Source: Perkinsus chesapeaki ATCC PRA-425 (lineage: Eukaryota > Protista > Perkinsozoa). Taken from it: DNA of 64,000 nt. The notes under the pieces were generated by a model. The model was not told where the DNA came from. It saw only the letters and a program-made list of their open reading frames with translations, and did not search any database. The translations under genes were made by a program, and so were the position numbers. Positions 19,434 to 60,400 of this stretch are shown one piece after another. Every line of letters starts with the position of its first letter. The first letter of the stretch is position 1. The stretch is taken from positions 2,620-66,619 of the forward strand of contig JAAPAO010000134.1 of the NCBI GenBank assembly GCA_013115145.1, read 5' to 3'.

Positions 19434-20971
19434 TTACGCAGCAGCACTATTGCTAGCTGCGTGCATCAACGTGATATTATCACCCTTAAGTAGAATCCTC
19501 CCTACAGGGCGACGAGTCTTCTTTTTAGTGTTCACCTACATCAACAAAAAATTCATATTTTCAATAACTTTTTCGACAAAGTGTTTTTGATCAACCTAGA
19601 CTCGATTGTCCAGTATAACATGAGTCGCATTGAGCCACTGTTTTCCGAACAAACAAAACGAAATCTTACGAATTAATCACTCCAATATAGCTCGTTTGAC
19701 GGATTGCAAATGATTATTAATCTAATAACTTCATATTTCTTCTTTCATTTCCTATAGTGCTCAATATTTACAGGATTACTTTCGATGATCCCCCATATTC
19801 ATAACGAACTGCGAAATATACCGGCCCCATGTATTAATCTAAACTAACACGCTGCTAGCCTTCAGCAGCTATCACCAAGTCACAAGAATGGCGAATCGAA
19901 AGGTATATAACAGTCAAATCTCGAAGGAATTGCTCTTTCGCCAATCCCCAAATAGTTGTGACAGTCCACTGTCGCAACTGAATTGGACGTTGAGAAGTAT
20001 AATCCTTGAATAGTACATACTGTGAAATATAATAAACTAAAATTTATAAATATTATACTTTTGAGTAGCTAGAATTAGTTCATGGTATTATCATTTTTTG
20101 AAAGCATTTCTCCATTTCCCTTATAACCTCCTCAGCATCATCCAACACCACATTCATATACTCATCAAAACCGAGAATGACGCCTTCCATGCGGAGGTCC
20201 TTATGGTCATATCTGAGGGAAATACGGTATGAAAAGACTACCATATGCCGTCATTCCGATGCATTTACCAACAATGCTAATATGAATTAAAGCATATACA
20301 GTATCCTTATACTGCAAATAATACGAGTACGTTGACAAAACAAGCAAGCCATCAACCTCAAATGTGCAAGACAAACGGTGCGATAATTTATATTCAATAT
20401 CAATACTATATAATAAGATTACATCAATAAAAAATATTATGGCATATAATAATAAAATACTAATAGAAAATACTATATTATAATAATTAATAGGAAATAT
20501 CTATATTATAAAATATTAATAGAAAATATCTATATTATAAAATATTAATAGAAAGTATTTATATTATAAAATATTAATAGGAAATACTATATTATAATAA
20601 TTAATACGAAATATCTGTATTATAAAATATTAATAGGAAATACTATATTATAATAATTAATACGAAATATCTGTATTATGAAATATTAATAGGAAATATT
20701 TATATTATAATAATTAATAGGAAATATCTATATTATGAAATATTAATAGGAAATATCTGTATTATAAAATATTAATAGGAAATATCTATATTATAAAGTT
20801 TAGCCAAAAATAGCCTCTCCCTCGTATCATTACAGCCAAACCACAATCCTCGTCTTTTCAGTAAGATACCTAATAAAATCGATCATTATTTTAACAACGG
20901 AAAATGTACTACCTGAAAATAAGATTGATAGGCATGGTCATGATCTTTTGGAGCTTCCTTTTGGACATCAT
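19434..20971 (-). CDS. SNRPE: Small nuclear ribonucleoprotein E (SmE), 4 exons
   Basis: [19 protein letters not shown]|[12 protein letters not shown]|[28 protein letters not shown]|[33 protein letters not shown]; all junctions GT-AG and in frame. Confidence 0.95.
20455..20797. repeat. AT-rich minisatellite, ~28-29 nt unit (aatattaataggaaatatctatattata-like), ~12 copies, in SmE intron 2
   Basis: Directly visible imperfect tandem units with no spacers. Confidence 0.9.
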
Positions 20972-29950: not shown

Positions 29951-30543
29951 CTATAACATGATCCTTAAGATTCCTCTACACTTCCCCGATCGCCTATCAA
30001 CTCCCTGTATAGAATCCCATACCGTCTCCAGCCCAATCCACAAAGGTTCGGTGTAAGGCCAAGGATCCAGGAGCAACACGCTAGCCGTTTCCGCGTCAAA
30101 AGCAGCAATCGGCGCGAAATGGCCATCCCAGGGAATTTGTCCGGCAAGAGTCATATCATAATTCAGAATAAAAAAACCTTCACGGTGCGTAAAAAGATTC
30201 TTTAATTCCTCCACATTCCGCGGTTGCACAATTTCTGTCTCCCATTTGAACACCGCAAAGCAACACTCACGCAGCTCAGCTAGCGTCAGGCCATGCTTCA
30301 AAAGCGTATCTTTTCGCACTGGGAAGAATTCAGATTCCATAATTTCCGCATCGCTCATCATCTTTCCCTCCACAGACGCTTTTATCATCGCCACTGACGC
30401 CACACCGCAAGTGGCATGCGTTTGCTGTCGTCGAAAGAAGGATATCCCAAAATCTTCACAGTGCGCAAATCGTCGAAGGCCTTCTTCAGAGCGCAATAAA
30501 CATACCGCATTCTCATATCTAGCAAGCGTTCATCCGAACTCAT
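29951..30543 (-). CDS. PCS: Phytochelatin synthase-like papain-fold enzyme, catalytic domain only, no intron in the domain
   Basis: Q-x4-CG (QQTHATCGVAS), FILNY...GHFAPIAAFD, LLLDP and closing RG, giving a complete Cys-His-Asp triad. No in-frame ATG precedes the catalytic Cys. The ATG at 30543 needs +1 nt (plausibly in a TTT run) or an upstream exon. Confidence 0.85.
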
Positions 30544-32650: not shown

Positions 32651-33481
32651 CTAGAATTTGTGAACAAAATAGGTCGCATCTGAATGAACCGAAGATAAGA
32701 AAAGTAATAAAAACGAAACCCCTACCCTCGTGATCGAAAGTCTCAAAGTATTTTGGAAAACGTTGGAATACTTCAGCCTTCGCCGATCCCCTAGGTGGTG
32801 ACGCATACACGACTTTAACATTGGGCCATCTCTTTGGTATCTATAATATGGATGCCCCCTGCGAGAGGGAGGGTGCCCTACATCTTCTAGTGCCTTTGAT
32901 ACCAACTCTTTCCCGACTTTCACGTCGACTTCCTTCATAAAAAGGTAAATATAAATACCATCTTCATCTTTAAGGTTCAGTTCAGGACTAAGCAATACAA
33001 AACTGCCCAAAAGCAGACCACTCCAGATTCCTTACAAGCGTCTTCGAACTACCATCGGAAGATCAAAGGGAGACAGTGTCACATAACCCAGTTGTTCCTG
33101 AAGAACACCACTCACTTCCTGTGCCAGTAACGTTCCTACTTTCTCGACGTCCCCTTCTTTACGTACAGCAACATAGTAATGGTCTTCCGGATAGTTCTCT
33201 GAAGAGCCGACAATTTCTCCTTCCTTTTTCAGCCTGTATTCAACATTTTGCTCATCTTTCTTGTTAAAACTCATGAACTTCGCCTCGCGCGAGGTCGGTA
33301 CACCAAAAGGGCTACCTCGTTCAACCTAACACCTTGGTTATTGATGCTGATAATAGACGCATACTTTAGGGTTATCTCCGCCCCCTTTGTTTTCACTCGT
33401 GTGGCCAGCCTGTTTGCCTCCTAATGCTTGGTGGGTATTCCACGGGAGGCATGCAAGCACGGTGATGAGAAAGGTTCTCAT
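32651..33481 (-). CDS. Secreted GNAT-fold protein, array copy 1 (most divergent; 6 exons)
   Basis: MRTFLITVLACLPWNTHQALG (signal-like)...NVEYRLKKEGEIV...PEDHYYVAVRKEGDVEK|EQLGYVTLSPFDLPMVVRRRL|PELNLKDEDGIYIYLFMKEVDVKVGKELVSKALED|IPKRWPNVKVVYAS...DHE|DATYFVHKF*. Intron positions and phases match the neighbouring copies. Confidence 0.7.
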
Positions 33482-34528
33482 GAAAGATGGTGGAAACTCT
33501 GATACGATGGCCTTAATCGATCATCGACATTCGACAGTGGACACGTGATGAACATAGATTTCTCCAATCTATCAAACCAGCCAGGTATGGCTGAAACGAC
33601 GATCTCCCTGGTCCTCATGACAACCTACGTGCAACCATGCTACAACCTAGGTGCCCCGGCTACTGCCTAAAGTAGACGAATTCCCGTCAATCCCTAAAAG
33701 GGAGGTGAAGCCCAGACTCCTGAGCAGATTCTCAGAAGGCCGATGGAAGCCTTACTCTCACGATAAGCAATATGACTGGTGAACGGGATAGTATTACAAC
33801 ACAGAGCAAAGGGAAGGAACAGCATCGCACACAAGAACATGTATTCGATAAATATGGAGGATTGGATAATATCTTTTTATCTGGGATTGAATGACAATAA
33901 CATTTAGTAGTGTTATCCAAATGCCGTATAACAAATATCATCAATACTCGTTTTTTAATAAGTTTTACATCATATGAGGAAAGACGCAGAAAAAAGTGAA
34001 ATCGGAAATAAGTACAGTATTAATAATGTGAATTCCTCTGTAGTATCTCATCATTTCTTATTGCCGATGGCAGGATACTTGTAAATGTAAAGCTTGTTCT
34101 TGGGGAAATCTGAGAGGAATTGCCGTAGTACAAACATGCAAGATGTAACACCGATTTTCACAAACAGCAACCACGTCGCGAACCACGTGCCCGCCGAGGT
34201 CGCCTACCAGAGTCCTGTCCAATATATCTAAATAGGCTATCCGGCGCTGACGCATCGTCAATGGGTGGAGCCGGCCCGTGCTCCATCGATACAACCGCGA
34301 ACGTGAGGTCTGGATGGTTGGCCTTGATCTAATACATGGAAATTTTCTCTCAAGGGTGACCGACAATCATACCTGCTGTAATGCCGATAGTATCAACTGC
34401 ATCTCCAGTGTACTGCTGGCGCCTGGTTTGGGCAACACGTTTGCAGATCTTAAGAAAGCGGAGGCTTTCGTTGTCACCATCTTACCGCTGCATACCGAGA
34501 AACCTACATCCTGACAACACCGGCAGGC

Positions 34529-35593
34529 TTACATTTTTTCTTTTGCACGGGGTCGGGCAGAGCCCGGAGCTGTTTGAGGAGGCCTTGTCGAGCCTGATAT
34601 ATCGGGGAGTCGCATAGGAAACTCGAATTGATTCACCTCAGTTGAAGTCACGTCGTCGTGAATTGTACACGTGATATGAACTCCTGGTGTTCTCGGACCG
34701 CAAGAAGCTGGCTTCGGGACCGGTTGATCATTCACAGAGGGTGCTTGATCGGGCTCAGTGGGGTACTCGTAAATGTACCACGGGAAGCCTTTTGCGGAAG
34801 CTAACAAGAGAAAACTAACAATTACCCAACAGATATGCGTTGACAACAGAAGATACTTAGTAGGTAATCTAACAATTACTAGATAATATCTTGTAAATAC
34901 ATACTGTGTTTGGTAACCGAGCTTTGGTTAGCTCACGAATAGAGAGGTTAGCGTTCTGATTCACGAGAGTTTACTCAAGAAATTAAATCCTGCACTTTCA
35001 AAGACTCCTTGTGGTTCTCTCATGTCCTTCATTCCATACACGCGTTTCACTTCTGGCCACTTGGCTCTAATCTGAGATAGCGAGATCGTTTGAGTGTAGT
35101 GGATTGCGATAACTGAATACATCGTCCAATGCTAATGTTAGCACTTTCTCCTCGAGTCCTGTATTCCCGTTCCCTAGAGGGTGGAGAATTCTTGTCTCTA
35201 CGACATCTTCAGTTTGAACTTCTTTCGGACTAAGCGAATACAAAAGATATAATAACTACTCTCCTAAAAGCTATATGCCATTACATCTGCTTTCGTATGA
35301 AGTCATGCACTTGGCCCCTCCACGCTTTTACCGCCACAGGCTGGAAAAACAGGAGTATCGGACTGCAAATCCGCTTTGATCACCTTCTCTCCACTTATCG
35401 GATTTATTGCCCCGAAATAATGAACATCGTCGGGCATTGGTCTTCTGAAACCCGCTTCCTTAGCAGTCAGCGATCTGTATTCGAAGTCTTCAGCATTTAA
35501 CCTTGTTAATGGCTTCGACTGCTGGGATGATTTTATCGATAATTGATAAGAGATGTTGATAAGACAGATAATAAGGAGGAGGGAAGCTCTCAT
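34529..35593 (-). CDS. Secreted GNAT-fold protein, array copy 2 (5 exons, Pro-rich tail)
   Basis: MRASLLLIICLINISYQLS...DFEYRSL...GEK|PVAVKAW...RKQI|PKEVQTEDVVETRILHPLGNGNTGLEEKVLTLALDD|IRAKWPEVKRVYG...FESAGFNFL|TSAKGFPWYIYEYP...; all GT-AG and in frame. Confidence 0.75.
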
Positions 35594-36130
35594 TAATACT
35601 ATTAACTCCTAAGATACATTACAGAGCATGGCCCTCGATGGTCCGTATAATGGAACTTCTAAAATCGACACCGCCCGAGGTTCCCTAGCCGTCTCGTCTC
35701 GTAATTATCGATGGCGTGCGCACACTGGCTTGAGTAATGTGTAATCGGGAGAACGACGCCAAATGATGGTGTAAGTCTTGGAGGATCTAAGAGCAGTTCA
35801 AAAGAGCTTTAATGTTCTGTCTGAGATCAACGGTCTGACCGTCAACCACCATGGAAAACTAAAGAGTTGCTATCGGCAACTTGCAAATGAAAAGTTTGGT
35901 GGTGTGAAAATGCAAGAACTGAGTCTTATTGACAACGGCAAAATGGCAAAATGCTGCTGCAAGAAGAGCCTTACTAGGAGAGTATAACAGCCCGCCAAAT
36001 TGGCGGCGCCAATGTGTAAGCCTGTGCATTAAGCACAACGCGAAGCCTAGATGAAGATAAACACCTCAAATAACATGCAACTGATAAACTTAATGGACAT
36101 TGTCCATTGGACAACATACAAATGGAGGTT

Positions 36131-37160
36131 TCAAGAGTGTACATCGTCCTTGCTACGTCGATTCGGGTACTTGTACAGATAAAGACTATACTCCGCATCA
36201 TCTGACATATAGAAAACATGGGTCAACACAGGAATACAGCTCCTGAATAGCAGAACCGCAATCGTTCATTCGTATGGCATTGCCTGAAACCGGTCACAAT
36301 GCACGAGCACGAGTTGGTGAAGCCACGAAGGAACATATAGAGTCCCCAGCAAGAATGCATTTGCTGTTGGCTTTCCCTCTGTGGACGTATGTCACAGCAC
36401 GAATCCCGTTGTGAGATCTTTGTGAGTCGAAAATGGTGGCAAGTGAATCAGGTCAACTAATTGTTTGATTCAAAGCTAACAAATTCAAAGGCTAGATGGC
36501 TCGCTACTTGGATCCTTTCCAACACATTTAAACCCATTCTTCTCGTATAAGCGTATAGCATATTTGTTCATGTCCTTCACTGATAGATACACGGCCATTA
36601 CCTTCGGCCATTTCTGCCGTATCTTGTGCAAGAACTTAAATTGTCAGTATTATAATGACGTACATCTTCCAATGCCTTGGGGAACATTCTAGATGCTATT
36701 CCTTTATTCCATAAAGCTTCATCTACCTTAACCAACGAGACGAGCACCACAGCATCATCCTTCGTCTTCTCAGCACTGGAGTCAGTATTGCTTCACCCAA
36801 CTTGGTAGATTCAGGGCTTACAGATTATCTAGCACCGGCTGTGGTAAATCGTCTTCACTCAAACGCGAAATCACGATTCCCTTTCCGTTCTGCACCAATG
36901 CAACGCTGGTTTTGCTCATATGATTTGCGCCAATCTACCTTGCTCCCAGGTCCTCTTATACGAGCTGCAAAGTAACGTTCGTCGTGAAGAGGCATCTCTC
37001 GTCTGTGCCGTTTCCGAGGAAGCTCATCATCACGTAACGGTCTGTATTCAAGGTCAGCAGCAGTTAATTCGGCCAGTGGTTTTGATTGCTGGGCGGACCC
37101 CAACGATGTTTGGTGGGTGATATCTATAAGATAGATGATAATAAGGAGACAAGGGTTCAT
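36131..37160 (-). CDS. Secreted GNAT N-acetyltransferase, array copy 3 (intact, canonical motifs)
   Basis: MNPCLLIIIYLIDITHQTSLG...DLEYRPL...GSK|NGKGIVISRL...DNL|AEKTKDDAVVLVSLVKVDEALWNKGIASRMFPKALED|IRQKWPKVMAVYLSVKDMNKYAIRLYEKNGFKCVGKDP|NDAEYSLYLYKYP...*. GNAT motif A (VxVxxxxxNKGIA) and motif B (YLxVxxxNxxAxxLYxKxGF) are present. Confidence 0.85.
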
Positions 37161-37583
37161 TATCAATAAGAAGAGGGTAACTGCTATGATGCATACACGA
37201 GGATACGCAAGTAAAGCCTCACAAGCTGGAGCATGACTATGGAGAGATGTATGCGGTAGGCGTGGGAGACTCTTGATTGGAAAAGCCATCCCTAACAAAC
37301 AGCTTGAAGCTCATCGTAGATGTCTCGTCTCGTACTGATCGATGGCGAGCGCACACTGGTTCTTTCATCCAAATGATTTAGTCATTATGATTAACGATAA
37401 CTCCATGTTCCATAATCAATGGTGTACGCGCCAAACGCATGAAAACGCAACGCAGCTGGCAACAATGGGCATCTACAGTAGAACATGTGAGCGGAACGGA
37501 GCACGCAGCATTTAAGTACCTCAGTCTATCAATAGCGGGAAAGAGCGACAGCACCACTATCATTGCTGCGACAAGCAAACTAA

Positions 37584-38606
37584 TCATAGTAGATACGTTA
37601 GCTGTGAACGGATGGATTGACAGGGCGAATGAGTCATGAGAAAAGACCCAGGATAAATTCCGCTTCCAAAAGATACATTCGACCACTCGGTGATGCGTTC
37701 CTGGTCGCCAGATGAGGGATATTTGTAAAGATAGAGAGCTAGTCCGTCTAAAAACAAACCCGAGTAAACGCCCAGCTTGCACGCTATTAATGGTCGCGAA
37801 GGGGTATGTGCGGATCAGCCCAATTACATCTTTTCCCATCGGGAAGCAAGTCCGACAAACAACAGAGTAAATGCCCCTCCCAAATGTGACATGGGAAGAA
37901 TGCACACGGGAAAAGATGTAGATACAAATGGCGTCTAAGTCTTACCTGGTTCCGTAATTGCGGTGGAGTTGTATTTCCCGTAGAAATGTACTCGAGCTTT
38001 ATAATACTTCGCAGCATCTTCATCACTATTGTCGATTTGCAAGTACACTGCTATAGTGTTCGGACATTTCTGTCGTATCTTACAAATAAACTCATATAAC
38101 GATGTAGTCAATTGCATATATAATAATACATCATTCAGTGCTTGCGGGAACATTCCAGATGATTCTAGATGCTACTCTTTTATTTCGCCAATCAGGACGT
38201 ACCCAAACGTCCCCTATGTAAATGTCGATCTCATCGTCTTTCTTCTCGGGACTATAGATAAGACGCTTTTCCCATGGAATAGATAACCCTTACGTACAGC
38301 GCATCCAAAACGGCCCGCCGAGTACGACTCTCCTTGTACCACATCACATACCCGACCGTATCCTGACATGGATCGCTAATGCCACTACGATGCACTGCTG
38401 GAGATTTTCTTCTTCTCTGTATATCGCTCTTTCCCCTCTACAGCGGTCTCTCGCCCCATGTTCACGCCAAAGCGATGCTCTGTATTCAAGATCATCAGCA
38501 GTTAGATTGGTTGATGGTTTGGGTTGATCGGTTGTTCGGCTGATTTTATCAACAATTGGTAAGTGATGTTGATAAGACAGATAATGAGGACGATAAAAGT
38601 TTTCAT
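37584..38606 (-). pseudogene. Secreted GNAT acetyltransferase, array copy 4, frameshifted
   Basis: MKTFIVLIICLINITYQLL... IYIGDVWVRPDWRNKRVASR, then a 10-nt tandem duplication (catctagaat/catctggaat, ~38150-38175) shifts the frame before MFPQALND|IRQKCPNTIAVYLQIDNSDEDAAKYY; last exon DGLALYLYKYP. Confidence 0.7.
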
Positions 38607-39072
38607 TAATAATAATAGAGTGAGAACTACGGTACTATGTATGTACTATTATAAAGTACTAGTAGTGAATCCCTACTCTCTACCCACCTCACTGGTTCGT
38701 CTGATCAAGAAAGTAAACCACAATCTGAATCTGACATAACATCTGCGATACTCCTCTGTAGGGCTGTCCTCTCAATCACAGTCCTTTCGCTTACAATCAC
38801 CGAGGTGCCATGTCATCTGCAGACTGCGTATCATTCCCCTTGGATAGCACTGGTTAAATGCTCATCTCAGATGGAGAGCTCTCCTAGACGAGGTCCCGCA
38901 ATCAGTTCTTTCAGAACAACCTGCAACTATATGGGGAAATGTGGAGCTAGCAACCTCGGCCCGGAATCACCAATAGTATCCCAGAGCGCAACAAATTCCG
39001 AACAATAACATATTGCACAAGCAGATGAGTGTAGTCCATATCAGAGGACTGAACAGTGTAGAATGGCTGTGA

Positions 39073-39838
39073 CTAGGCAACGTCGGGGCTGGAAAAGCTG
39101 AGAAGATACAGGTTGTATTGGGACGCTCGTGAGGAAGGGACCCAGTAGAAGATCTAGAGGAGAAGGAATACGCTTGAGATTACTCGGGTCGATTCCCACG
39201 ATCCTGAAACCGTTATTCTGATAGAGACGAGCGGCAGCCTCGGCGAACTCATCATTTATAGGGGCCTTCAAGTACACTGCTATTGCTTGCGGCCATTTCT
39301 GTCGTATCTTTCACGAGCAGTTCAATGGCTACATCATGATCACATACAGCTTTTAGTGCTTTTGCAAACATCCTAGATGCTACTCTTTTGTTCCGCCAGC
39401 CGTCATCTACCTCTACCCAAGATATGTACACAACATCCTCACTTCTCGACTGTCCAGGACTGAAAAGGGACGCATACTCTTGCTACATGCAAGTTGCGTA
39501 AAATGCCCTTACAGTTCCCTCAGTATGTCCTCAGGGGCACTTTGGGCCAATTTCGAATATATGATCCCTTTTACATTCTGAAAAGTAAAAACCTCTCAGA
39601 AAGGAAAACACAGGAGCGGTTTTACTTTCGGCACTTTCTCCCAGGCAGCGACAGCAACGAAGCAGAGAGTATCTTTCCATGGACAACGGAATGAACCGTC
39701 CTCCGCACGGAGAATCCGGTATTCAAGGTCCTCGGGATTTCGCTCGGTTAACAGCTTGGATTGCTCCGATGATTTTGTGGATATTTGATAAGTGATACTG
39801 ATAAGACTCACAATGAGATGCAGATGGGATGTCCTCAG
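39073..39838 (-). pseudogene. Secreted GNAT acetyltransferase, array copy 5; start codon is CTG where paralogs have ATG
   Basis: (CTG)RTSHLHLIVSLISITYQIS...DLEYRIL...VPK|NVKGIIYSKL...REL|PGQSRSEDVVYISWVEVDDGWRNKRVASRMFAKALKA|IRQKWPQAIAVYLKAP...AAARLYQNNGFRIVGIDP; otherwise open. Last exon boundary uncertain; could be functional. Confidence 0.65.
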
Positions 39839-57400: not shown

Positions 57401-60400
57401 AGCTCTTCCAGCTCCTGAGCAGTTTCAAGTTTCTGAGCTTCTTAACAAGACTGCTAAGGTAACGTCTCACTAAGACGGTCTTAGTGATGACACGGTAGTT
57501 ATAATTAGTTCGATGCACCAATTTTTCTAGTTCAGTTTGCAACGAACCATTCGCTGGACATGACAAGTCTCTACCACCTCCTATATCAATGTCATATCAT
57601 GACTATGGTGTTCGCTGGCAACTTGCGCAACGACCTCGTTCCATCGAGCCCTGTCGTTGGAGTTCTAGCTCATCCTCCCGTCGAACAGGTTGATGAGACC
57701 TTTGTTATGGAGTATGTTGTGGAGTTTCTGGAAAGTGCGGGGATACAGGTTGTCCCTCTACTCTACGACGATCCTTACCTGGAATCTCAACTACAATTGA
57801 TAAGCGGAGTTTATCTCCCTGATGGCAACGTTGACGTTACCCTGGATCACCCCTATGTGAAGGCGGCAAACGCGATCTACAAGTATGCTCTTAAAAGGCA
57901 TTCTGAACAAGACCCTTTCCCACTGCTCGGCATGTGCCAAGGTCATCAAATTCTTGCTGCTCTGGCCGCGGGCACCGCCGACGTTATCGCAAAGAAAGCT
58001 TATACAACTACTGATGTAGCTCTTAGTCTTAACATCAACGGTGATGGAGGCGAAATGCTTGGTTCACTCCCGCCGAACGTGAGACAAATTTTGGAGAACA
58101 AGCCGGTGACGGCTAATCTGCATAGTGACGGAGTGCCGCCCGAGATGTGGGACGACTTAGAAGGCAGTTCGTGATGACAAGTACCAGCGTGGATCCAGTC
58201 AACAATAAGGTCTTTTCAGCTACTATGGAGTCCCAGCCCGGCGTGGCACCCATGTATGGTCTTCAATGGCATCCAGAAATGATTCCGTATCTTTGGAGCC
58301 GTTCATATGAGAGTGCTCTTGCCAAAACTATGGACTCTCTCCGAGTTAGTAATTGGTTTAGCTTATTTGTTGCCGGTGTGTTTCATGGAAAGCTTAATAG
58401 ATTCAAAGACCAAGAAGTGCTAGATGCAGCGCTCATCCGCAACTATGTTCGCCGCTGCGAGGATTTCTACTGCAGTATTTCGCAAGGAACCTGCTACTAT
58501 AAGGTTTCATCTAGTTCATTGCTTCATTAGAGCATACCATCCTTCGTATGACAGGCTATCACTGAAAGCTCAGGCTGAGCTACTCAGCGCAATAGCTCCT
58601 CACAGTGTTGCTGTGCGCGGGTTATCGTCATTATCACTTAAGAAGATAGTGTTGGGTTACTATGAGATCGACCAGGAGCAACAACACCGCTGGTTGCGAG
58701 AACTACCATCATGGTACTACCAGAACTACCATCATAATAGGCCGCTGAACATACAATCATTTCATTATGGTATTTGATACAGCATTTTTCGTATAAACAA
58801 AAGTGCCAAAGTCACGTTTTTGAGTTCAGCGGAAGGTTCAAAGGTTTCATATTCAGCTATAAATGATGGTACATTAGCTCTGCGCAGTCGCATATACATG
58901 TAATTTCAATGTCTATTAGATGTTACTAAGTTAAAGTTCCATGGGTAAGATTGCAAGGTTAATCAGATCTCGAAAAATGCCCTTGGTGACTGCGCGTCAA
59001 CGAGGTAGACCTAGTATCCCTATAATATACCCTTATTATAAGGATACCTTTCGAGTGTGGCATAGATTTAATCTATTGGATTATATGTCCCGATCGCTGA
59101 CTTACTTTCTCTTCCACTTGCTCATTGGCATCCTCTAGTTGAGATTCCAATTGCTTGTTATCCTTTTTCAACGAACTAGCCTTATTCTTCTCAACCTAGA
59201 CAAGAAAGAGCCCAACTTCACACATTTTCACAGATATGCATGAGGACGTGGAAAAATTGTACTGTGCCTGCCCCTAACCCTAAGATTGGATCGTCAATAT
59301 TACCCTTAATATACAAACGTAAGGTCACAAAAAGAACGAGGATCATATGATACGATGGAGATAATCTATGGCAGGGATTCTCTGCTTCCCTTGAGGAGCT
59401 CCGATGGAAATTCTGTTAGAAACTAGACCCCAAAGGGCCATAGAAGTATAACGAGTCATGAAGTACGATGCTTACCCTTAGTTCCTCGTGCATTCGGTCA
59501 CACTCCGACTTAAGCTCGTCGAAGTGGACTTGAAGATATGATTCTGATGAGAGTACATCGCTCGCGCGAAACTTACTACGAATTCCCCGTCCTTACTGCT
59601 TTGATATTCCCGCCTGAGCTGCTCAATCTCCTGCATCGCTCCCTCGTGCTCTCGAACCTGGCAGCAACGATGTGTTGAACTGTTTGTTCTCAAGTGAAGT
59701 CCAGTCACGTACTTTCAGCTTTAGTAGCTCCTCTTTCATTTTCGCTTCCTTAAGCGCTTCCTCTCGGTTCCGCAACAGCTCCTCAAGCTTTCGCTCTCGC
59801 TCCTGAGAGATTTCCTGGCGAACAGCGTATTCGGGAACAAAATGGTTATGAGGAAAAGACTAGCATTGTATTAATAAAAGTACAGTCCTAGCGATTATGT
59901 AATAATACTGAAGACTTTAGAGCTGCATGCCGGGTGCGCACCGCACCCGAAAGACTAATGCTCGAGCACACAATTCCACCACAGCGCACAATGACGCTAG
60001 TGTGAAGCGGCACCCGATAGCATAGTAGTGTGCTACGCCGCCATTGGTTAACCAATTTTTTTTCTTTCCTGTGATAGGGAGGTGTTGGCAGCCGGTACTG
60101 AGTATGTTTCCCCACGAGCTGAAGATGATTTGAGTTCCTTACTAGTTAACGGGACCGGGTATTAGTATGCTGCAGCACACATCATGAAACACTTATAACA
60201 ACATACTACTGGAACCATGAGATGTTTCTGTCAGAAATGCGGCTCTATTCAGAAATGCGCGTTGGTCCTAATTCCTAAGAAGTACGCAAGCCTAGGAACC
60301 TGCCGATCGTAAAATGTTTGATCTTCCTGGAGCACAGAGCATCAACTGCTATACATAGATATCTATCATGGACAACAGTTCTTCAAGTGCCCGTTCTCCT

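Follow-up and report, generated by a model that had tools for sequence, protein, structure and literature searches.

A tandem family of predicted NAT-type GNAT genes with signal-peptide-like leaders in Perkinsus chesapeaki

Introduction

N-terminal acetylation is almost wholly cytosolic, and a locus in the clam parasite Perkinsus chesapeaki poses the question of what a family of acetyltransferase-like genes with hydrophobic, secretion-type leaders might do, and in which part of the cell. The locus occupies positions 32651-39838 of a 64-kb stretch of genomic DNA (the window; contig C376:2620-66619 of an assembly of 41.7 Mb in 3544 contigs). An earlier note, made from the letters of the window alone, had joined scattered short reading frames into five tandem genes and read them as secreted, fast-diverging GNAT acetyltransferases that might act as effectors.

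That observation is partly confirmed as a whole, and the interpretation placed on it is partly supported. We consider it somewhat probable that the array consists of five paralogs from a Perkinsus-restricted family of GNATs of the N-terminal acetyltransferase (NAT) type, which carry a signal-peptide-like leader and work in the secretory pathway. New here are two disabled copies, two copies that lack the acetyl-coenzyme A (acetyl-CoA) motif, an orphan exon and a chimeric public gene model.

Results

The window, at about 44% G+C, belongs to an intron-bearing eukaryotic genome. Alignment of the DNA of all five units revealed five homologous neighbouring genes on the minus strand (32651-39838), here called copies A to E, and gene models were built from this alignment together with minus-strand reading, lists of GT and AG sites, and splicing by coordinates. 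The array copies have in common a hydrophobic N-terminal leader, a (D/E)-Y-R motif and four introns. When spliced, copies A, C, D and E show open frames with GT-AG introns throughout, and the four common introns lie at homologous positions in phases 0, 2, 0 and 1, exactly as had been proposed. Also present are the other features of the original description, namely an AL(E/D/K)x^I..(W/C)P junction (^ marking the exon boundary), a VY motif and a final aromatic strand (LYLYKYP, WYIYEYP or YFVHKF). Homology and shared structure thus uphold an array of five genes, but of these only C, D and E are intact (195, 247 and 204 amino acids, respectively), A and B being damaged.

Joining the exons rebuilds family motifs such as ...ALED^IR.KWP..., and the rebuilt junction motifs recur in separately annotated proteins of P. 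chesapeaki (P0002) and of P. olseni (P0005 and P0006). The splice junctions remain predictions drawn from sequence logic and public gene models. Exon-1 matches between paralogs reach E values of 1e-9 to 1e-17, and the homology is therefore beyond chance. Single exons or public proteins served as queries for profile and fold searches, and the full spliced models of copies A, C, D and E were compared with one another by alignment. No further copies of the family were found elsewhere in the 64-kb window.

Copy C (36131-37160, minus strand; exons 37160-36939, 36889-36822, 36775-36664, 36622-36508 and 36201-36131; introns of 49, 46, 41 and 306 nucleotides) is the best-preserved GNAT of the array. 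Copy D (34529-35593, minus strand; exons 35593-35384, 35340-35285, 35229-35121, 35071-34975 and 34800-34529; introns of 43, 55, 49 and 174 nucleotides) has a degenerate acetyl-CoA motif and a Pro-rich C-terminal tail of about 80 amino acids. Copy E (32651-33481, minus strand; exons 33481-33365, 33325-33140, 33097-33036, 32987-32882, 32840-32726 and 32679-32651; introns of 39, 42, 48, 41 and 46 nucleotides) is highly diverged. It has an extra, fifth intron of 39 nucleotides (33364-33326) between the leader and the EYR motif, as well as a Gly/Ser/Lys-rich spacer of 45 residues, and an internal ATG at 33274 would yield a leaderless product.

Profile searches place part of the family among the GNATs. 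Against the Pfam model Acetyltransf_1 (PF00583, curated cut-off 20.7 bits), copy C scores 23.7 bits in the form of a public spliced protein (P0001:1-170), full-length P0001 scores 25.8 bits, and the same 170 residues nearly reach the cut-offs of Acetyltransf_7 and Acetyltransf_10. The P. olseni relatives score 32.7-48.9 bits, and two paralogs with an open, in-frame intron 3 pass the Acetyltransf_1 cut-off as uninterrupted genomic frames at 23-25 bits. P0002, a paralog that is 48% identical to copy C, lies just under the threshold at 19.3 bits. Searches with separate exons of copies B and C return GNAT matches that are weak but consistent, and no Pfam GNAT match was found for the exons of copy D or for copy E in its public-model form. 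The best NCBIfam match, which is weak, is RimI, and all NCBIfam scores are far under their cut-offs. Single exons had no matches among PDB sequences, nor did a word-indexed protein search with the open frame around exon 1 of copy C return any, and the P0002 sequence alone retrieved from the PDB sequences only a chance sulfotransferase match.

Predicted structures carry the assignment further. The AlphaFold2 model of P0002, whose input alignment was built from family proteins and exons, has a predicted local distance difference test (pLDDT) score of 78 and a predicted template modelling (pTM) score of 0.72; residues 30-170 form a core predicted with confidence, and the leader is disordered. The top Foldseek matches to this model are human and Arabidopsis Naa60 (E = 5e-7), and 233 PDB entries match at E ≤ 0.001, almost all of them GNAT-fold among the 50 listed. 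With VIA-align, the model superposes on human Naa60 over 146 residues (Z 15.7, root-mean-square deviation 2.9 Å), followed by Ard1, RimI, Naa10, Naa30 and Naa50 at Z 13-14.5. A family profile compared with PDB sequences finds Naa50, ElaA, Ard1 and Naa60 nearest (E about 2e-4), and all look-alikes in the ESM Atlas are GNATs. For copy E, the AlphaFold2 model (pLDDT 71) has a best PDB match at E = 8e-3, and its top matches are mostly GNAT-fold and weak.

Because the structural and profile neighbours are Naa60, Ard1, RimI and Naa50, the family is, on the evidence of these models, a NAT-type GNAT. The proposal that the genes encode GNATs therefore holds for copy C, which exceeds the Acetyltransf_1 cut-off, and for the fold of its paralog P0002, and is doubtful for D and E, which have no profile match. 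To call all five copies acetyltransferases was too strong, given that the model of E is, in addition, only weakly GNAT-like.

The acetyl-CoA motif also varies among the copies. The consensus Q/R-x-x-G-x-G/A appears in copy C as W-N-K-G-I-A, with the Gly and the Ala kept and Trp in first place; copy A has R-N-K-R-V-A in this region, and several paralogs have R/Q-N-K-G-V-A. In the alignment, copies D and E have no recognisable acetyl-CoA motif, and within the array a recognisable CoA loop is confined to C and the damaged copies A and B.

All copies begin with a signal-peptide-like N-terminus. The leader consists of a Met-Arg n-region, an apolar core of 8-10 residues, a polar stretch, and sites that follow the (-3,-1) rule at residues 20-23, and in most copies about 15 residues separate it from the first GNAT strand. 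By a heuristic test, n-, h- and c-regions are each recognisable in C, D, E, P0002 and P0005. The leader is kept across the paralogs and in the P. olseni protein P0005. Hydropathy over 19 residues ranges from 0.9 to 1.6, with the window of copy D peaking at 1.64, and such values fit the h-region of a signal peptide better than a membrane span. Targeting to the secretory pathway is thus plausible, although the heuristic nature of the test and the basic residues that follow the core advise caution about the signal peptides claimed originally.

On the explanation that we favour, the leader would be a cleavable signal peptide that carries the intact products into the endoplasmic reticulum (ER). In this compartment or a later one of the secretory pathway, copy C at least might transfer acetyl groups from acetyl-CoA to amino groups of secretory proteins, the N-termini being the likeliest sites, and D and E may be enzymes of altered specificity or pseudoenzymes. 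Elsewhere in the assembly, two exons (C431:7194-7614; L014 and L015) score 66.7 and 35.2 bits against Acatn (PF13000), a family of acetyl-CoA transporters. They are a candidate for an ER acetyl-CoA importer, of uncertain specificity in that the same model also matches an E. coli control.

A number of observations weigh against this explanation. Where catalysis is concerned, the catalytic His on β5 of Naa50 and Naa60 is replaced across the family by Lys, Thr, Ser, Glu or Arg. In a profile alignment to Naa50, the position of the catalytic Tyr on β4 is kept in A, P0002 and several paralogs and is missing from copy C, which has Leu instead. The α1-α2 segment, between strands 1 and 2, is much shorter in the P0002 model than in NATs. 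Of the five copies, A and B are dead, and D and E are without a CoA motif. Where location is concerned, Lys and Arg cluster just past the apolar core (for example, K21, K24 and K27; R-T-A-R-R in P0005), a position for basic residues that is more in keeping with an anchor whose domain faces the cytosol than with a signal peptide. The leader-bearing proteins have no retention signal of the KDEL/HDEL type, few cysteines and hardly any glycosylation sequons.

The family cannot be shown to belong to any of the named NATs, because the His is not conserved, the Tyr is absent in C, the α1-α2 segment is short and the C-terminal helices of Naa60 are lacking. Naa60 (NatF; human 5icv, Arabidopsis 6tgx and 6th0) is an organelle-associated NAT and the best structural match to the P0002 model, and the family profile finds it at E = 4e-4. 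However, identity is only about 17%, and Naa60 has no N-terminal leader, whereas every Perkinsus family member starts with a hydrophobic one. In Naa60, C-terminal helices hold the enzyme to the cytosolic side of the Golgi; the Perkinsus proteins end 10-25 residues past the last strand (in D, with the Pro-rich tail), and the P0002 model offers there only a 7-residue helix of low pLDDT. Naa50 and Ard1 are the best profile matches in the PDB (Arabidopsis Naa50, E = 1.8e-4; Sulfolobus Ard1, E = 2.2e-4), and the motif A and motif B regions of these proteins and of RimI align with those of the family, but all three are cytosolic and leaderless.

The main rival to a secretory-pathway enzyme, and one that we regard as possible but doubtful, is a NAT tethered to the ER, the Golgi or another organelle by an uncleaved N-terminal anchor. 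Its GNAT domain would face the cytosol, with ordinary access to acetyl-CoA, and would acetylate membrane or organelle-bound proteins, doing a Naa60-like Golgi job by means of an N-terminal rather than a C-terminal anchor. That the closest structures are Naa60, that positive charges lie C-terminal to the hydrophobic core, that the disulfide, glycosylation and retention features typical of lumenal or secreted proteins are missing, and that the hydropathy of copy D rises as high as it does are all consistent with such an arrangement. The apolar core argues in the other direction. In most copies it spans only 8-10 residues before polar N, T, Y, Q and S follow, which is short for crossing a bilayer and typical of the h-region of a signal peptide.

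The array is one part of a larger family, which we estimate at about 15-30 copies in the P. chesapeaki genome. With an exon-4 profile, a genome search at E ≤ 0.01 gave 33 matches, which lie on about 20 contigs and include all five array copies; a search with exon 1 of copy D gave 13 family exons. Further arrays lie on contigs C908 (about six copies), C2461 and C1566. The one on C908 (about 28300-50800; loci L016-L018) is a second minus-strand array and includes the copy at L003:2120-2813, to which copy B is closer (about 80% nucleotide identity) than are any two copies of the window array to each other. Parts of the two arrays may therefore share a block duplication.

Outside P. chesapeaki, the public protein search found only proteins of P. 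olseni, leader included. There was no family match from P. marinus in that search, which is not proof of absence. In the searches made, the family thus appears only in Perkinsus. Members of the array share 25-48% of their amino acids, and the proportion of differing synonymous sites among them (pS, 0.68-0.82) is saturated and exceeds the proportion of differing nonsynonymous sites (pN, 0.36-0.52). We discarded the ratio of nonsynonymous to synonymous substitution rates (dN/dS) among array copies as untrustworthy, the synonymous sites being saturated. Saturated pS with a lower pN indicates old duplicates under purifying selection, and the fast divergence claimed for the genes is not shown.

These data bear on a second alternative, that the proteins are secreted effectors which acetylate targets in the host (clam haemocytes) with the host's own acetyl-CoA. 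A signal-peptide-like leader without a retention signal would suit it, as would lineage-specific tandem expansion and gene death in a parasite, and there is a precedent in the cyst nematode GNATs of the Hg-GLAND1 type, candidate effectors of plant parasites that combine a signal peptide with a GNAT domain and are proposed to act on the host (PMC4828791). The likeness extends to a signal-peptide-like N-terminus and a GNAT domain in a parasite. However, the nematode genes came from bacteria by horizontal transfer, whereas the Perkinsus genes are interrupted by four or five spliceosomal introns, and their nearest relatives are eukaryotic and archaeal NATs. Old copies under purifying selection carry no arms-race signature, the proteins have few cysteines, and an extracellular enzyme would find no acetyl-CoA unless it were delivered into the host cytosol. 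We know of no delivery motif in Perkinsus. A literature search, which did not cover work on secretomes, found no Perkinsus paper that ties acetyltransferases to signal peptides or secretion. The case for a host-directed role is circumstantial, and we judge such a role to be improbable.

Copies A and B are disabled, each in a different way. Copy A (39073-39838, minus strand; exons 39838-39626, 39577-39513, 39459-39348, 39307-39184 and 39125-39073; 188 codons; introns of 48, 53, 40 and 58 nucleotides) keeps every splice site and its frame. At 39838-39836, however, it has CTG where the other copies have ATG. Upstream, the frame contains no ATG as far as a stop 22 codons away, and downstream Met first occurs in frame in exon 3.

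Copy B (37584-38606, minus strand) was delimited by the five-copy alignment and by alignment to its closest paralog, the intact-looking copy on C908 (L003b). Exon 1 contains a frame-shifting 8-nucleotide insertion (about 38521-38528) between the leader and the EYR motif, and a compensating pair of deletions, of 11 nucleotides and 1 nucleotide, near 38449 and 38436. The donor of intron 1 reads GA instead of GT (38409-38408), and exon 3, the motif-A exon, bears a frame-shifting tandem duplication of 10 nucleotides (38156-38165). With two uncompensated frameshifting insertions and a lost donor, copy B is a pseudogene. A 26-nucleotide intron 1 shortened by deletion was considered and rejected, since the paralog alignment gives a full 47-nucleotide intron without a donor. 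Exons are conserved no better than introns between B and L003b. The overall dN/dS, counted on concatenated in-frame pieces of B, is 0.31 at a dS of 0.67, and most of the divergence is therefore older than the inactivation of B.

Intron 3 contains no stop and has a length divisible by three in the B-type subfamily and in one further paralog (L003:2286-2333, L002:1203-1244 and, in the window, 38051-38101). The frame thus stays open from exon 3 into exon 4, and a transcript that retained the intron could encode a protein with about 14-17 extra residues at this point.

One further element of the array resembles a relic. Between D and E, behind a good polypyrimidine-AG acceptor, lies a family-type last exon (34051-34109, minus strand, phase 1) that was read from the sequence as ...LYIYKYP... 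followed by a stop. Apart from this orphan exon, the spacer between D and E has no similarity to the five units, and no other family exon is nearby. The orphan is either what remains of a sixth gene copy or a 3' exon that D can use as an alternative.

Could the array be a graveyard, in which the integrity of C, D and E is transient? The disabled state of A and B, the lack of a GNAT profile match for D and E, the orphan exon, and the exons of B that are no better conserved than its introns would agree with a decaying family. Yet C, D and E have kept every splice site and open frames even though their synonymous sites are saturated, pN is below pS, and both the family and its leader have been retained in two Perkinsus species. 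We consider decay of this kind very unlikely.

Alternatively, a bipartite presequence might begin with the leader as its signal peptide, and the enzymes might acetylate proteins of a relict, plastid-like organelle. Plastid proteins of myzozoans enter by way of the ER, first with a signal peptide and then with a transit peptide, and plastid GNATs acetylate plastid proteins in plants. A Ser/Lys-rich stretch follows the leader, and copy E has its long Gly/Ser/Lys-rich spacer. In most copies, however, the 15 or so residues between the leader and the first GNAT strand are too short for a transit peptide, and a plastid destination seems to us highly improbable. Horizontal transfer from bacteria is unlikely, given that four spliceosomal introns are conserved and that the nearest neighbours are NAT-type proteins.

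A 38-nucleotide non-coding block precedes two of the intact copies, at 35691-35728 upstream of D and at 37322-37359 upstream of C, and is 92% identical between them by blastn. It lies 100-200 nucleotides upstream of the start codons of these two genes only, and a genome search finds just these two occurrences. It may be a promoter or 5' untranslated region element kept since duplication.

Members of the family already exist in public databases under other guises. A full-length paralog elsewhere in the assembly is, letter for letter, the NCBI entry 'hypothetical protein FOL47_005876 [Perkinsus chesapeaki]', and UniRef names one P. olseni member 'N-alpha-acetyltransferase 60'. A search of 1.84 billion representative proteins with an exon-1 profile returned two family proteins and P0003, an unrelated repeat protein that matches only a short LEYR stretch and was rejected as a family member. 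No paper on the family was found in our literature search; its members are on deposit as hypothetical proteins.

The public model P0001 (528 amino acids; window 32654-37160, minus strand) is a chimera that merges three genes. It consists of exons 1-4 of C, the last exon of D, three invented exons from the D-E spacer (34596-34507, 34447-34370 and 34328-34209) and all of E, and it skips the first four exons of D. Its residues 325-528 are identical to spliced copy E, and its junctions match our coordinate-based models for exons 1-3 of C and for the whole of E. Copies A, B and D do not appear to be annotated as proteins. As a result of the chimeric annotation, the family is under-counted in databases.

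Two neighbouring open frames are unrelated to the array. One, at 29954-30496 on the minus strand, matches phytochelatin synthase (65.6 bits), and the other, at 57560-58171 on the plus strand, matches Peptidase_C26, a class-I glutamine amidotransferase (26.1 bits). Between positions 20001 and 22000, G+C content falls to 0.29, compared with about 0.44 in the rest of the window.

Discussion

The earlier note took it that GNATs are normally cytosolic because they need acetyl-CoA. That premise is dated: ER-resident GNATs occur in apicomplexans (PMC10038149) and GNATs with signal peptides in nematodes (PMC4828791). Mammalian NAT8 and NAT8B, Toxoplasma TgNAT8 and Plasmodium Pf3D7_1437000 are ER-resident GNATs that have been linked to acetylation of secretory proteins (PMC10038149). 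Compared by description, they resemble the Perkinsus family in being GNAT domains of the eukaryotic secretory pathway, some of them from close relatives of Perkinsus. Unlike that family, with its leader of the cleavable type, they are held by transmembrane anchors.

The closest parallel to the activity that we propose is the N-terminal acetylation of secretory proteins in related apicomplexans. Secretory and exported proteins of these parasites are N-terminally acetylated in the ER by an enzyme that has not been identified; the best NAT candidate in Plasmodium has been ruled out, and no candidate NAT of P. falciparum has a signal sequence (PMC10038149). Perkinsus represents a sister lineage to the apicomplexans in which a whole NAT-type family bears secretion-type leaders. 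A stricter proposal, which we hold to be unlikely, is that the NAT-like enzymes with leaders acetylate N-termini inside the secretory pathway as soluble proteins of the lumen.

What the array would mean for the biology of the group depends on where its products reside. If the leader is a membrane anchor, the family would be a lineage-specific analogue of Naa60. If one member is lumenal and active, it would offer a concrete enzyme with which to test secretory-pathway acetylation, in an organism that can be cultured and transfected (PMC8062965). And should the proteins prove to be soluble lumenal NATs, they would belong to an enzyme class that has been inferred but never identified in Myzozoa, and Perkinsus would be the first organism to provide a named enzyme of this kind for assay.

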